A stretch of 63,765 nucleotides of DNA, the filler included, from Olpidium bornovanus S191 (Eukaryota; Fungi; Olpidiomycota), in NCBI GenBank assembly GCA_017911155.1. It is 30 parts of 30 records of this genome, joined end to end, with 100 filler letters (N's around TTAATTAATTAA, not from the genome) between each part and the next. Parts side by side here need not be neighbours in the genome. Positions count along the whole stretch, not along the records: positions 4,107 to 8,516 come from JAEFCI010000799.1; 29 more parts are not named here. One strand, written 5' to 3'. Below are positions 3,287 to 9,626 of this stretch, piece after piece. The notes beneath the pieces are model-generated. The model saw only the letters and a program-made list of their open reading frames with translations, did not search any database and was not told where the DNA came from. A program made the position numbers and the translations under genes. The first letter of the stretch is position 1; each line of letters starts with the position of its first letter.

Positions 3287-4410
3287 TCCGGTTGCAAATT
3301 CCCTGGAACGGCGATGGGAGAACGCACTGACGACGCCGTCGACCGACCGCGTTAGAAAGCGCCGCCTGTCAAGTAGAACTGGCCCAAGCCGGGGCGCGCG
3401 CCGATCAACGTGGCGCTTTTCCGCCGGTACGGCCCACTCCGTCGCGCCGGAGGGCAGCACGGTTGGCCCGCCGCTCGGCCGTCCGGTGAACATCGCGCGC
3501 GCGTCCCCTTGACAGTTGAGACAAACAACCTCGCACGTCCCCTTGACCCTTGCGGCAAACCTGGCGGAACGCGGGCCGGGCTAAAACCTTTCATGGACGT
3601 TCCTCCACCGGCGGCAACATCCCGCGACGGCTCTCGCTCCAACCTCCTTCGCCCGGGGGCCCCCCACCCCGTCTCACGCCCCGTGCGGAGAGGGGGCGTC
3701 CCGCCGGGCGGAGAATCCTCCTCCGCCTCCGCGGCGCGGGCGGGGGCGGCGAGGGGGGCGCAGCTGTTCGGTTCCGGGGTTCCTCCGCCGGGTATGCCGG
3801 CCGGGACACGACGCGCCGCGGCGGGCACCGGCGAGGAAGCGCTGCTTCTTCGGGGGGAGGAAGCGGGGGGGGGGGGGGGGGGGGGGTGGGCGGGGGGGGA
3901 GGGGGGGGGGGGGGGGGGGGAGGAGCAGTATGAAAAGGCACGTGGGGAAATAGCGAGTACAAAACACGGGGCTTGCACTAACTCGCAGAATGCAAAAAAA
4001 AACAAANNNNNNNNNNNNNNNNNNNNNNNNNNNNNNNNNNNNNNNNNNNNTTAATTAATTAANNNNNNNNNNNNNNNNNNNNNNNNNNNNNNNNNNNNNN
4101 NNNNNNCCGACCCGACGACAACCTTTGTGCGAGTCCGTGCACATTGCTAGGGCCTCCGGCGGGGACGCATTTTACTTTGCACGGCGTAATTGGTTTGTTT
4201 TATTGCCCCCTTCCTTCTTCCTCCATGCGCGCATTATCACCACCACATCCCATCCATCCGTCCCCTGCGTGCGGCGCTCCGTCTGTGACTCTCTTTCATT
4301 CTATCTTTTCCTTCTTCTCCTCCTCTTTGCGCTCTTTGTCACCAGGTCTCTTGCACGCCGCAGGCGACCCCTCTTGCCTGCGCGCTCCGGCACGCTTGAG
4401 ATAGCGAGAG

Positions 4411-4471
<61 letters not shown>

Positions 4472-4651
4472 GGTTTTGGGCGCGGGGCGATGGGGGTTTG
4501 GGGCCAAAAAAAAAAAAAAAAAAAAAAAATAACCGCCTTCCGCCACCACCACCCTTCCCCCCTAACTCCCTCCTTCCCCGAGAAATCACCGGCCCATCGA
4601 AACGAAAGTGAGAGAGAGAGAGAGGAAAAGACCCGAGGGGAACGACGGAGG

Positions 4652-6852
4652 ATGTTGACGTGTCGCTGCCTGAACATCAAGATCCACACCCACCGCCCCA
4701 CGCGCGACGGCGCGACTGGCGGTGGTGCCGCCGGCGGAGGGCAGGCTGTCTCCGGCTCCGACGAGGAGGACCCTTCGTCGTGCCGCGGAAGCCGCGCCCC
4801 GGTGCGGCTTGGCGTTGGAGGCCTTACCGTGGTGCGTCCGTCCGTCGCCGCTGGGCGGACGAGCCGGGTCGAGCGGGGAAGGACGGCCGGGGGGCGGAGA
4901 GGCCGCCTATCTGCGCGTTTTTGCGCGGGCCAGCCTGGCCCTCCCTCTGACTTTCGACCGTGGCCCGTTGCCGTAGGAACAGCCGGCGCTACTGGCGATC
5001 GCGAGAGAGCCGGACCGGGAACCCGCGTCCGTGTCACTGCGCTGTCTCAACTGCTCGTTTGCCGCCTGCTCGTTCGTGGCCCGGCCGGGGATCGGTTTCC
5101 CGGAAACCGCCCGCGATCTGGTCCGGAGGCCGATCCCGACCACGCTGGCCCCCTTAGACGGCCTCGTCCATGTCGCTGAGGGAGCTTTGGTCCGTCGTTT
5201 CACGGGGTCGCGCAGCGATCCTGGTTTGTCTGCCGAGCTAAGCCGCGAAACGTGGTCTTGAAATCCCGCGCCGCCACCCGTGTTGCCCCTTAGACAGCCG
5301 AGGAAGTGGAACTTGCCAAAACGTTACGAGATTACTCGCCGGCTTTCCGCTTGGTGCTCAAAGGCAGCTCTTTGGCGGCTGAGACGGAAGACGATTCCAC
5401 CCCAAAAGGCGCGTGCCCGCGCCGGCCTGCCTAATCCCGACTTGAGAGCCGATCGCCTTTTCGCGGAATATCTTTCTAAGCGCGGGAGATAATGCGCTGT
5501 TTCCCGTGCCGGTGGCGCGAACTACAACGGGCTATGCTGACGCTCTGCTTCGTCGTTTTTTTTTTTCCAGCGCTGCGACCGGAATATGCTGAAGCGCGTC
5601 GATCAATATCATCCGCGCTGTCTAAGTTCCTCGTTAGCGACGCGCGGACGACCGAGGAGGACATTGCTCGGTACAGGGAGAAGATGCTGGCAGACCTACA
5701 GCAAAGACAGCGGGTGGCTGCCCGTCAACAACACTTCTTGTGGAAAACAATCTGTGATGCTCACGCCGGCGACGTGTACGAGCGTTCGAATGCGAAGGAA
5801 AGCTCTCGCGCGGAGGCGACCGCGGAAAAAGGCGAGGCGGCAAGCTCCGCAAGCGGCGCAGCCAAGCCACCGGCCCAGCGACTTTATGCGGTAGACAACG
5901 ATGCAACAACCCCTCCTCCCGCCATGCCGGATGCCGAGCTCGCAAGCCACCCTGCGGCTTCAACGGCTATTTGGTGGGACGTACGGGATAAACGCCTGTC
6001 ACGCGGCCTCCCCGGTGAGCATAATTTCCTGCACTTCGCCGTTAAAGTCTGCTCTCCGTGACGCGAGGTCTTACGACCGGTACACTTGTTTTCCATCATC
6101 GCCCGTGATTCGCAACCCTGCGAACCAAAAACCAGAGGAGCCTGAACTGGCGCTCGGAACCGGCTCAGGTACGTTACAGCGGCACCGACCGCTTGAGATC
6201 AAAATTCCTTTCTGTGGCAATTTTAACGTGTGTGTGCTCAGACCCTGTCCAGCTAGACGTTCAACACGACAAAGAGAACGGTCACGTTGCAAGGGCGGGC
6301 GAGGGAGAAGGAGAAAGAAATTTCGACGACGACAACGATTCGGCGGGGCCAGAAACCAGCGATTTGGAAGGCGAGTCGGATTCGGATGACGTTCCCGGAC
6401 AATCGGCAGGGAGCGGGGAAACAGGTCCGCGGCACGAGTTCGCACGGTACGGCAGGTCCGCGCCGATCAACATCGTATTCCCGCGACAGAAGCCGGGCGA
6501 CACGCGTTCGTCGATCGCCAGTTCGGCCCGGATTCAGATGTCGTTCAGGAAGCAGTCGGCGCGCTCCGGGCCGGCTTTCGGGCGGCACCGGCTCTCCGAT
6601 TCGCCGGCGGGCCGCCGCCGACGCGAGTCCGGAGAAGGCCGCGGGAGCTCGCCGCCGCTTCCCGCCGCGGATTTCGAGGCTGTCAGCTCGGGCCCGCCGC
6701 CGTACCGTCCGGGAGACCGCCCGCGAAGCCGGCCGGCGGCGGCGGCGTCTCCGTTCGTTGCGCCGCACATTCTGGCCGAGCAGGAAGAGGAGGAAATGAA
6801 GCATTCGTTATTCCTCGGGTCCGTGCCGAGGAACCCGAGATCACACTACTGA
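4652..6852 (+). CDS. Multi-exon protein: N-terminal CxC motif, central helical segment, PRAS40/AKT1S1-like C-terminal motifs
   Basis: Starts MLTCRCLNIKIH. Middle exon EYAEARRSISSALSKFL...EEDIARYREKMLADLQQRQ. Last exon has YGRSAPINIV, SIASSAR, FVAPHILAE and LFLGSVPRNPRSHY*. The gene is plausible; the family assignment is inference. Confidence 0.6.
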
Positions 6853-7559
6853 TGATCGACCCCGCCCACGCACTTCCCACCTCCCACGAGTTGTATTCCG
6901 TAGCGCATCCCCGCACGCGAAGTCATCATCTACTGTTTGGTTTGAGTCCCCCTTCCCCTTATCCCCCTCCTCCCCCCCAGATCATGGCAATGCTGGGGTG
7001 AGGGGACGTTACGATGTTAAAGAGCGGAAATCGGTCTGGCAGCGGCCCAACCCCTACATCAGCGGCGTCATGCGTGAAAGTCTGCCAACCACGATGCAAA
7101 CTGTCGCATCAATGTATTATGCGCTCCAAGTAAAAAGAAAAAAAATAAACGTTGCCTTGCTTTGTGATTGTTTTTTTCGTTTTTGAATTACAGGCCTTTC
7201 CCCCCCCCCCCCCCCCTTTGTTGAATTTTTGGAGAATTCGCAGGAGAACCCAGGACGAGCCCGTGAGGGAGAGGACAGAAAGAAGACTGTACTCAGGGCA
7301 TCATGTCGCTATCTCGTTTAGGCCTCTTTTATAGGGTGGGGAGCTAGGATTCATGAACAGGCGTAACAGAGGTTGGTGCTCGCAGTGCATCCGCCACTCT
7401 GCCTTCCCCTTTATTTTACCCCATAATTTCTAAACCCCCGCCTCCCTGAGTGCACCATGCCCATAATCACCCTTATTCTACGTATTCTACGGTTATCTTC
7501 CTTTCGATTTTTTCCTTCCGGTCGGTTTTACGTGTGGCTCTCGCGCTCGCACATGCCGC

Positions 7560-8000
7560 GCTTCTCTCGGAATCCCTCAAACTTGATGCGGTTCGGCGAG
7601 TTGGTGCAGATGTCCGCGACGTTTTTCTGCTGAGCTGACCCGCTCGATGGTGATGACCTTGTCGGTATTGCACCTTTGCAGGTGGTGGTATCGGATGCCT
7701 TTGTGCTTTCATCGCCTTGACGTTTTGGCATCTCGCCGTGAGCTCGGCTGTTTCAGAATTGTCAATATAGAGCAGAGTTGGCTCCTTGGCGATGCACGTC
7801 ATCTATGCTCTTGAATATCAATCTCAACCATGCAACTTCTTGTGCTGCCGCGGATCCGGCGACGAATCCATGATGACGTGGCAACGCATTTTTGGCAAGC
7901 CCACCTCCATGAGATCGGTCCTCCTTGGTACATTGCCACCCATCTCGTCGTCGACGCTCGGGTTTCTCGACAGCCGGCCCAGTCAGAATCCGTAAACATG
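7560..8000 (-). mobile_element. Degenerate Ty1/copia retrotransposon RNase H remnant
   Basis: Frameshifted pieces FTDSDWAGCRETRASTT...GGPISW...QKCVATSS, PTLLYIDNS and ADICTNSPNRIKFEGFR match the copia RT/RNase H C-terminal motifs. Confidence 0.85.
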
Positions 8001-8084
8001 ACGAGGACTGTTACATTTCTTCCAGTCGTTTATGGCACGTTGCGAGAGGTTTTCTCGAGAAACGCACCTCCCACGGGTCAAAGC

Positions 8085-8270
8085 TAGTGATGGGTCCGAG
8101 TTGCCCCAACTGGAGTCCACTCCTTCAACTTGACGGTTCAGACCATGCTCGAGCTGGGATTTTCAACTCGATGGCCGAAGTGAACTCGACTCGAAGCAAC
8201 TTGGGCACCACCTTGTGCCCAACTCGGCTGACTCGAGCACAACTCAGCCTAACCCGCTAAAATCAACTCA
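8085..8270 (+). mobile_element. Possible end of a hAT-like DNA transposon or MITE
   Basis: TAGTGATGGG at 8085 followed by clustered AACTCG/ACTCG subterminal-like repeats. No partner inverted repeat in the contig. Confidence 0.35.
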
Positions 8271-9626
8271 AAAACAAACGCCACTGCTCGCCCCCCCCCC
8301 ATCTTTTTTTTTTCCAAACGCTGCTATCTTTCCAAACGTCGCTTCTTTTCCAAATGCCGTTCGCTTTTTTAAACGCTGTTTGTACAGCTGCATTACATGG
8401 CAGACGTGGCGTCCGTTTCAGGAGCCTCTGTCGCCTCAGTTTGAATGTTGAAGACGTTGCTACTGCCACCAAGGGAACCAAAAGACAGTCCACGATCTGG
8501 TGTTTTTTCGAAGAGCNNNNNNNNNNNNNNNNNNNNNNNNNNNNNNNNNNNNNNNNNNNNTTAATTAATTAANNNNNNNNNNNNNNNNNNNNNNNNNNNN
8601 NNNNNNNNNNNNNNNNGACATCTAACGCCGCTCCTGATCCACCGGCGATGGTTCCTGTTATCCCTGCGTACCTCTGTTCCAGCGCAGCTGTGGATTTAAC
8701 AGCGGTGATGAGTCTCAGGGAGCGCGGGTTTGCCATGAGTGCACTGACCATTCTCCCTCGAGTTCCCACCATGGCCAGGCTGGTACTAGCTGCACGCGCT
8801 CCGAGTGCCACCAGAGGGCAAGCAAATGCCAGTGCACTGACGACTGCGCCAACAATCGGCACGGCCACTTGCGCGTCGCGGAATCCAGTCTCGACTGTAG
8901 TCACTTTCACCTGGATTCCGAACCAGACGTTCCCGATTCCACTGCGTGTCATGCAATCTCCCGGTCTCGGCCAATTCTCGTAGTATATCGGGCCAAAATT
9001 GGGTAGGCGCGACGTGCACGTTCATCGGAGTTCCGTTGCAGACTTGCAGTCCACAACCGGCTATGCCGGTCGCTACTCCACGCTTATCGAAGTGTGCTGC
9101 GTTTGTGATGGCCAATCCTGCAAGGATCCAAGCGAATCTTATTGCTGCGACACAGGTTAAATACTCCTGCGCGATTGCGCGTTCTGCTTTAATCCATTCG
9201 CTCTCGTACCTTGTGCTTCATGTGTTGTGAACGCTCACTTGGTTCCCTCCATTGAGTGTTCATCTCCTGCTTTCACTGTTCTTTCAAGCCAACTGTTTCG
9301 CCTCATGCAGAAGTACCAGAGCATGAACTGGCCGAACAGACAGACGCTCAGAGCGATGATTGCTATTCCAGCAATTCCGACCCAGGAGCCATTCGCGTAC
9401 GGGCACAGCAAGTGACAATGATGTTGGACCGCTGTGACAGTATGCCTGCATTCGCACGTGTACAGGCGTATCTCATCTCGCCCAATGAATTGTTCCAGCA
9501 CTGTGCTGTTACTAGCACGATTTTCGCTGGCCACAAGCGAAGGCGTTAATATTGCCGCCCTGCGTATCACAATGTAAGGGCGAACTGGAACATGACCGAG
9601 ATGCGCTCTCAGCTACCAGGGAGAGT

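Follow-up and report, generated by a model that had tools for sequence, protein, structure and literature searches.

Positions 4652 to 6852 (plus strand) of a 63,765-nucleotide stretch of Olpidium bornovanus S191 DNA (assembly GCA_017911155.1; 30 parts joined end to end, hereafter the window) hold a predicted gene that we consider likely to belong to an unnamed family. The family otherwise consists of hypothetical proteins of Neocallimastigomycota and of horseshoe-crab proteins with a complete Pfam PRAS domain at the C-terminus, and the tail of the protein suggests a role related to target of rapamycin complex 1 (TORC1), the complex that is inhibited by human PRAS40 (AKT1S1). Homology to the PRAS family is well supported by the sequence comparisons described here, and the PRAS40 family is probably older than animals. 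Judged from their motifs, the TORC1-docking parts are poorly kept in this copy.

Relatives of the predicted protein

A phmmer search of 1.84e9 representative sequences returned P0001 as the only match (E 5.9e-4). The cluster of P0001 includes the hypothetical protein OUM67084.1 of Piromyces sp. E2, and the Olpidium protein and P0001 are collinear across seven blocks. Two word-indexed searches were empty because low-complexity stretches swamped the list of 8000 candidates, so that P0001 missed even itself. The productive profile was a trimmed alignment of three sequences, which was searched against 5.8e9 sequences and retrieved 14 Neocallimastigomycota proteins together with P0018 (E 7e-5, 69% query cover). 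P0018 is the uncharacterised protein LOC143226316 of Tachypleus tridentatus, which carries a precomputed PF15798 annotation.

P0018 matches Pfam PRAS (PF15798, gathering score 27 bits) with 74.5 bits (E 1.6e-20, residues 307-415) and served as the positive control for that profile. Its tail (MFDIDG ... FATSLPISMPVW ... MVASIKALAMS ... MFGDLPKRRLNT) is plainly PRAS40-like, and its N-terminus (MFFFCNCLNVQVHT ... ILDIGGITKQQPLL ... MCSCCG ... NYSRLFKIILPS) corresponds to the Cys-containing domain of the Olpidium protein. Limulus polyphemus XP_013781055.1 (LOC106465379, P0019), which falls in the same cluster as P0018, has an architecture identical in kind. BLASTP aligned the Olpidium protein with P0018 over amino acids 1-216 (E 2e-8), and a profile of fungal sequences only matched the N-terminal 200 amino acids of P0018 in hhalign (97.3%, E 2.3e-11). 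The strong homology to a clear PRAS-domain protein is therefore located in the N-terminal 200 amino acids, outside the Pfam domain. The first-pass annotation had described the CxC-containing domain as an extra part added to a PRAS40-like protein; since horseshoe-crab PRAS proteins share it, the domain is ancestral, and it is absent from human PRAS40.

No relatives closer than the Neocallimastigomycota proteins were found (tblastn E about 1e-22), and the Olpidium protein is nearer to them than to the arthropod ones, which would fit a fungal origin. Neither a self-copy nor a close orthologue was present among 5.8e9 clusters and 1.84e9 representatives, where relatives occurred at ~22% identity only. 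A metagenome scan yielded Neocallimastigomycota-like contigs only (Ga0138317, Ga0352989, Ga0352978 and Ga0334613) and no closer relative. Pfam also returned Vac7 (E 0.034, 14 bits, below the cut-off of 28.7), which was rejected as Ser-rich low complexity; with the full protein its E value was 1.

The family has a common layout, which from the N- to the C-terminus comprises a Cys domain (CxC...CxxC), a conserved YS-x-x-F-[KR]-[LI]-[IV]-L block followed by a long helix, an extended linker that is acidic and disordered, and a PRAS-type tail. The parts that precede the linker in the Olpidium protein are as follows.

4652-5096, plus strand: N-terminal Cys-containing domain (amino acids 1-100), split by intron 1, with residues invariant in family alignments
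5294-5368, plus strand: conserved block TAEEVELAKTLRDYSPAFRLVLKGS (amino acids 132-156), which aligns with NEESMVTAKMNINYSEVYKLILNSQ in Piromyces and SSQVASLIKSENYSRLFKIILPSR in Tachypleus
5579-5794, plus strand: long helix, probable coiled coil (amino acids 173-244)

Within the N-terminal domain, CxC is encoded at 4661-4669 and CxxC at 5043-5054, and a G-G-x-x-x-[EQ]-Q-P-x-L block is also invariant in the family alignments. The four invariant Cys (C4, C6, C83, and C86) suggest that the domain may bind zinc. It matches no Pfam family, and a weak PDB match, to the TRAF-type zinc finger 2d9k_A, is not significant (E 0.38). The long helix is conserved throughout the family, with I201, Y204, and A219 invariant, and is the sole element modelled confidently in two AlphaFold2 runs (predicted local distance difference test, pLDDT, up to 92 for the block).

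Gene model and shared intron positions

The part of the window that holds the gene (4107-8516, from JAEFCI010000799.1) is eukaryotic DNA with a G+C content of 46-74% in 300-base windows. Its plus strand carries open reading frame (ORF) fragments in three frames that can be joined through short introns, and the following model was built by hand.

4652-6852, plus strand: whole coding region, six exons, 531 amino acids, intact and in frame
4652-4831, 4977-5189, 5294-5408, 5571-6014, 6136-6168, and 6242-6849, plus strand: exons 1 to 6, with the stop codon at 6850-6852
4832-4976, plus strand: intron 1, phase 0, donor GTGCGT, between GGLTV and EQPALL
5190-5293, plus strand: intron 2, phase 0, donor GTCCGT
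5409-5570, plus strand: intron 3, phase 1, GC-AG type with donor GCGCGT, a CTGAC branch-like site, a T11 tract, and a CAG acceptor
6015-6135, plus strand: intron 4, phase 1, donor GTGAGC, 5' of the 33-base micro-exon 5, placed from splice signals and frame only
6169-6241, plus strand: intron 5, phase 1, donor GTACGT, followed by D|PVQLDV

The ORF opens at 4652 with MLTCRCLNIKIH, and all relatives begin with a Met that aligns with its first Met. Collinear similarity to P0018 and to Neocallimastigomycota proteins derived from cDNA backs exons 1-4 and 6. Exon 3 is needed because it is conserved in relatives, whose EESMVTAKMNINYSEVYKLILN is matched by its EEVELAKTLRDYSPAFRLVLKG; an earlier model that lacked this exon and joined 5223 to 5571 was dropped for that reason. 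The GC donor at 5409 is needed because it allows the only in-frame join of exon 3 to exon 4. Its sequence equals the donor of intron 1 apart from a T-to-C change, and the donors overall have a G[TC]NCGT-like form in common. Micro-exon 5 (6136-6168) is a candidate, proposed from splice signals and frame in a region that is not conserved.

Exons were also reconstructed for the Tachypleus gene (10) and the Neocallimastix gene (6), and introns were mapped onto the protein alignment. Intron 1 falls at column 71 in phase 0 in all three genes (GGLTV|EQP in Olpidium, GGISI|EQP in Neocallimastix, and GGITK|QQP in Tachypleus). Intron 2, also in phase 0, is at column 157 in Olpidium and Neocallimastix and at column 158 in Tachypleus. 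Intron 3, in phase 1, is found at columns 198, 193, and 200, respectively, in a gap-prone linker. Neocallimastix and Tachypleus both have a phase-1 intron within the codon that lies two residues ahead of the Phe of the TOR signalling (TOS) motif (D|IFLLDG and T|MFDIDG), and the last intron of the Olpidium gene, likewise in phase 1, has D|PVQLDV after it. The shared intron positions and phases point to common descent of the whole gene. A second phase-1 intron lies ~25-27 residues after the TOS Phe in Neocallimastix (codon 446) and Tachypleus (codon 333), three columns apart, and has no counterpart in the Olpidium gene.

Resemblance of the tail to PRAS

The last exon encodes the PRAS-type tail, in which VQLDV is followed by Y-x-x-S-x-P-I-x-I, a helix candidate (SIASSARIQMSF), RRRRES458, and a tail of the form FVAPHIL.... 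Its elements are listed below.

6247-6261, plus strand: VQLDV (amino acids 331-335), at the position of the TOS motif but with Val for Phe, and as far behind the conserved phase-1 intron as IFLLDG (Neocallimastix) and MFDIDG (Tachypleus)
6322-6336, plus strand: FDDDN (amino acids 356-360), another candidate for the TOS, degenerate, where an acidic stretch begins
6448-6477, plus strand: YGRSAPINIV (amino acids 398-407), counterpart of human YAKS(183)LPVSVP with the Ser conserved
6478-6546, plus strand: FPRQKPGDTRSSIASSARIQMSF (amino acids 408-430), candidate equivalent of the amphipathic helix that binds FRB, including SIASSAR
6613-6630, plus strand: RRRRES (amino acids 453-458), the sole RxRxx[ST] site that a regular expression finds in the protein
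6748-6849, plus strand: C-terminal tail SPFVAPHILAEQEEEEMKHSLFLGSVPRNPRSHY (amino acids 498-531), containing LFLGSVPRNPR

The first-pass annotation had set three strings of the last exon beside human PRAS40. All three are present in its frame, namely YGRSAPINIV, SIASSAR (6511-6531, amino acids 419-425), and LFLGSVPRNPR (6808-6840, amino acids 518-528), the last of which is indeed at the extreme C-terminus, three residues before the stop codon. The human strings that it quoted are also correct (residues 101-256, PDB chain 6sb0_T). The resemblance was assessed post hoc by ungapped BLOSUM62 scoring against 20,000 composition-preserving shuffles of the last exon. YGRSAPINIV scored 24 against YAKSLPVSVP, which was reached in 0.7% of the shuffles, and was the only motif to stand out singly. 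SIASSAR scored 16 against RIAASMR (6.4% of shuffles), and RIQMSFR gave an equal score. The top match to FGDLPRPR was PGDRPRSR at amino acid 485 (score 22, 5.5% of shuffles), and the LFLGSVPRNPR site scored 15; the abundance of Arg, Pro, and Ser in the tail produces several look-alikes of this third motif. All three motif scores in that order were reached in none of the 20,000 shuffles, again as a post hoc comparison. Taken alone, the motif resemblance to PRAS40 is suggestive at best.

Comparisons that include the relatives are more informative for the family. A two-sequence PRAS hidden Markov model (HMM) built from human and Tachypleus gave 6.5-8.8 bits with Neocallimastigomycota tails, scores that were reached in 1-4 of 1000 shuffles. 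Conversely, a Neocallimastigomycota tail HMM gave 14.2 bits with the Tachypleus tail, a score not reached in any of 1000 shuffles (maximum 6.7), in an alignment that spans TOS through YATSVPIKIP (FATSLPISMP in Tachypleus). A profile-profile comparison of fungal tails with PRAS tails by hhalign gave 75.7% and E 2.4e-5. For the Olpidium protein itself, amino acids 346-470 aligned with residues 300-421 of Tachypleus at a score reached by 22 of 5000 shuffles, and local alignments to Tachypleus had p values of 0.004-0.02, which is marginal.

The elements are not equally secure. In the Neocallimastigomycota tail HMM, YGRSAPINIVFPRQKP of Olpidium falls on the YATSVPIKIP columns with a score reached by 8 of 1000 shuffles, and the same columns take FATSLPISMP in Tachypleus and YAKSLPVSVP in human (27 of 1000 shuffles). 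By this alignment, YGRSAPINIV is a real positional counterpart of YAKSLPVSVP, and this part of the three-motif comparison holds. The SIASSAR segment is a plausible counterpart of the FRB-binding helix. Amino acids 408-470 aligned with the last Tachypleus exon at a local score of 35 (18 of 2000 shuffles, p about 0.009), with FPRQKPGDTRSSIASSARIQMSF on FPAPDDPEQMVASIKALAMSV and RRRRES458GE on KRRLNT412GE, and the helix segment proper pairing SSIASSARIQMSF with QMVASIKALAMSV. No significant similarity to human was found for amino acids 408-430 in shuffle-tested local alignments, and AlphaFold2 modelled no helix at this segment. An insertion of ~70 residues relative to the relatives lies between the strand motif and the fungal tail. 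The homology of SIASSAR and RRRRES is less secure than that of the first motif because both are inside this insertion.

LFLGSVPRNPR is probably not the region of Thr246, the Akt site of human PRAS40, and here the three-motif comparison is probably mistaken. The better candidate is RRRRES458, which aligns with Tachypleus KRRLNT412, itself equivalent to human RPRLNT246SD. The extreme C-terminus (FVAPHILAEQEEEEMKH...) instead matches the Neocallimastigomycota tail FTPPHIIIARTYQNDEAMMH (score 35, 11 of 2000 shuffles), whereas the score of the C-terminal tail was reached by 1285 of 2000 shuffles against the Tachypleus tail, which is no match, and by 146 of 2000 against the human tail, which is weak (p about 0.07).

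The TOS motif is present as FLLDG in the fungal relatives and FDIDG in P0018. Its place in the Olpidium protein would be VQLDV because this string has the same offset after the conserved phase-1 intron. FDDDN is the alternative; MAFFT aligned it with the second Phe of FLLDGFDDE, and it stands 42 residues before Tyr398, compared with an equivalent spacing of 41 in Tachypleus.

Alternative explanations

Several observations weigh against a PRAS40-related TORC1 regulator. The animal end of the family rests on two closely related horseshoe-crab gene predictions, and the statistically strong link concerns a domain that human PRAS40 lacks; if that domain were mobile, orthology with PRAS40 would not follow. 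Two AlphaFold2 runs gave no usable fold for that domain (pLDDT <50). The Olpidium tail alone scored 0.1 bits with the two-sequence PRAS HMM (130 of 1000 shuffles, not significant) and E 0.34 against the PRAS profile in hhalign. The similarity of this tail to human PRAS40 was not significant, and BLASTP against the human C-terminal tail gave E 3.9 in a register other than that of the first-pass annotation. A search with the Pfam PRAS profile, which that annotation had proposed as a check, gave no match up to E 10 in the ORFs of the window, the spliced protein, or ten fungal relatives. No PDB match was obtained with the single sequence or a fungal-only profile, although full-length PRAS40 is in the PDB. 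A regular expression for the TOS pattern, F-[acidic or x]-hydrophobic-[D/E]-hydrophobic, found neither a strict nor a permissive form with Phe anywhere in the protein, which agrees with the earlier remark that no clear TOS motif could be seen. The GC donor and micro-exon 5 are predicted features of the gene model. The proposal of a PRAS40-related gene stands through the family tie to P0018, the shared introns, and the family tails, and does not stand in direct tests against PRAS40.

These points would be accommodated if only the N-terminal domain and the helix were shared with the horseshoe-crab proteins, and the tail were a lineage-specific disordered region with PRAS-like strings that arose by chance or convergence. 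The protein would then be no TORC1 regulator, and its N-terminal domain would have another job. In keeping with this, all strong statistics come from amino acids 1-220, PRAS profiles and human PRAS40 show no significant match to the Olpidium tail by itself, the Phe of the TOS is lacking, and the tail, rich in Arg, Ser, and Pro, contains three different look-alikes of FGDLPRPR. We nevertheless regard a chance tail as unlikely. The sister fungal proteins match the PRAS tail independently (0 of 1000 shuffles, hhalign E 2.4e-5), and the matched part takes in a good TOS (FLLDG) that follows an intron also present in Tachypleus. The Olpidium protein keeps YxxSxPIxI at the aligned place, its helix and RxRxxS are collinear with Tachypleus (p about 0.004-0.009), and the order of the elements is the same across all lineages.

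A second alternative, which the first-pass annotation had named as a possible better match, relates this fungal protein to the 'senescence regulator' proteins of plants (S40/DUF584, with SAPxxIP and PPHE motifs) instead of to PRAS40. S40 proteins have SAPVN[IV]PDW and PPHE[YF]LA motifs, which resemble SMPIKIP and PPHIIIA. The C-terminal 110-160 residues of 10 of the 10 Neocallimastigomycota relatives scanned (P0001-P0013 set) gave sub-threshold matches to PF04520 Senescence_reg (E 0.002-0.2, 12.9-19.4 bits, cut-off 22 bits) that cover the profile from ~4-47 to 133 of 167. These tails score higher on Senescence_reg than on PRAS, though below the cut-off, which counts against the PRAS relationship. 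The Olpidium protein itself has no PF04520 match, no relative exceeds the cut-off, and the matches come from close relatives and are hence not independent. They also end at profile position 133, short of the DUF584 signature region. That signature, GRxLKGR(D/E)(L/M)xxxR(D/N/T)x(I/V)xxxxG(F/I) (PMC5666833), is missing from the Olpidium protein, P0001, P0010, and P0018 according to a regular expression. In addition, S40 is described as plant-specific, no N-terminal Cys domain is described for it, and the sole non-fungal match of the family profile is a PRAS protein. Membership in the S40 family is accordingly very improbable, and the sub-threshold matches may reflect an S-x-P-[IV]-x-[IV]-P module of old origin, common to the tails of PRAS and S40 proteins.

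That the locus is not a working gene, being a decaying pseudogene or a mis-joined model, is also highly improbable: the required GC donor, the lack of homology support for micro-exon 5, the absence of a self-copy from protein collections that hold distant relatives only, and a putative degraded retroelement 700 bases downstream would fit it, but an open frame runs through all six exons (531 codons), the phases are consistent, all family-invariant residues are kept (including the start Met and four Cys), three or four intron positions are conserved, and the donors are of the common G[TC]NCGT-like form.

Proposed role in TORC1 regulation

Human PRAS40 contacts Raptor through its TOS motif and mLST8 through a paired beta-strand, and its helix at 212-232 lies on the FRB domain (PMC6325617). 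The protein is phosphorylated by TORC1, and phosphorylation of Thr246 by Akt recruits 14-3-3 and releases PRAS40 (PMC6325617). By analogy, we infer that the Olpidium protein, as a relative of PRAS40, would regulate TORC1 as an associated pseudo-substrate whose tail would run along the complex. The YGRS(401)APINIV strand would be placed on Lst8 and the SIASSARIQMSF helix on the FRB surface of Tor. Ser401 of YGRS would be a TORC1 site, and RRRRES(458) would act as an AGC-kinase switch, whose phosphorylation frees the protein. The long helix (amino acids 173-244) may dimerise the protein, which would match dimeric TORC1. With the TOS Phe gone, Raptor/Kog1 docking in this species is probably weak, altered, or replaced.

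A broader scheme, which we regard as speculative and rather unlikely to be correct in full, is that the S-x-P-[IV]-x-[IV]-P tail with TOS and helix is an ancient eukaryotic TORC1-docking module. In the opisthokont ancestor, it would have been carried on a Cys4 domain and coiled coil, an arrangement kept in Olpidium, Neocallimastigomycota, and some arthropods, with the tail alone left in vertebrate PRAS40. It would be kin to plant S40/DUF584 proteins, which would then be candidate plant TOR regulators.

Comparison with known systems

Human PRAS40/AKT1S1 (256 amino acids; 6sb0_T, 5wbu_P) and the Olpidium protein have the same tail order, with the TOS position, [YF]-x-x-S-x-P-[IV]-x-[IV] including the equivalent of Ser183, the helix candidate, and RxRxx[ST]. 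The human protein differs in having a proline-rich N-terminus and neither Cys domain nor long helix. The TOS position reads FVMDE in human and VQLDV, without the Phe, in Olpidium, which also lacks the Trp that follows the strand motif in human PRAS40 and has ~70 extra tail residues and a fungal-type end. Direct sequence search gives no link between the two.

The horseshoe-crab proteins P0018 and P0019 have the architecture of the Olpidium protein, with a homologous N-terminal 200 amino acids, intron 1 at an identical position and phase, and introns 2 and 3 at near-identical ones. They differ from it in their canonical Pfam PRAS domain, TOS (FDIDG), SLPISMPVW, and MFGDLPKRRLNT, and in lacking the FxxPHI tail, and their identity to it is ~22%. 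The Neocallimastigomycota proteins (OUM67084.1; Neocallimastix californiae ORY21198.1; Piromyces finnis BCR36DRAFT_581100) have every block in common with it, including LWxxIC and the FxPPHI...M.H tail, and their genes have introns 1 and 2 at the same positions. In contrast to the Olpidium gene, they are AT-rich, have a good TOS (FLLDG), and lack the ~70-amino-acid insertion with SIASSAR and RRRRES. In plant S40/DUF584 (PF04520) proteins, as in the family of the fungal relatives, a strand-like motif, S-x-P-[IV]-x-[IV]-P, precedes one of PPH type. S40 proteins are described as plant-specific, with no N-terminal Cys domain reported (PMC7889505, PMC5666833), and the Olpidium protein lacks its GRxLKGR... 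signature.

Drosophila Lobe/dPRAS40, the reported fly homologue of PRAS40, is longer than the human protein and may share its N-terminal part with the Olpidium protein. According to one paper, a connection proposed between the Lobe mutation and Pras40 'has not been confirmed' (PMC6924039). The literature has presented PRAS40 as an addition to TOR signalling that is specific to animals (PMC3236823). PF15798 is listed in a 2025 survey of the TORC1 components of early-diverging fungi, which names no fungal member in its text or supplements (PMC11836306), and a literature search found no paper tying PRAS40 to these fungal phyla.

Flanking sequence

Upstream of the start codon are a perfect A58 run (4411-4468), an A24 run (4506-4529), and a (GA)7.5 run (4610-4624), homopolymer-type runs that are unusual for a promoter or 5' untranslated region. 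An in-frame upstream ATG is found among them at 4490; the homologues put the protein start at 4652. Downstream, the following possible signal was noted.

7144-7149, plus strand: AATAAA, possible polyadenylation signal ~290 bases 3' of the stop codon, a pattern match only

The 3' flank also holds a CCTCCCCCT-type repeat (6951-6976), a C17 run (7200-7216), and an 18-base tandem repeat, TTTTCCAAACGCCGCTTC, in 2.8 copies (8310-8359). On the minus strand, at about 7530-8000, are broken ORFs (FTDSDWAGCRETRASTTRWVAMYQGGPISW..., LLYIDNSETAELTARCQNVK, and QQKNVADICTNSPNRIKFEGFREKRGM), frameshifted and stop-ridden, which resemble the RNase H end of a Ty1/copia-type retrotransposon pol; they have no Pfam match.

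Significance

If the relationship to PRAS40 is correct, a PRAS40-type protein predates the animal-fungus split, and human PRAS40 would be a shortened form that lacks a conserved, unstudied Cys domain and long helix. Early-diverging fungi would then gain one more 'animal-like' TORC1 input. The family may serve as a sequence bridge for finding further members and represents a target for work in chytrids or Mucorales.

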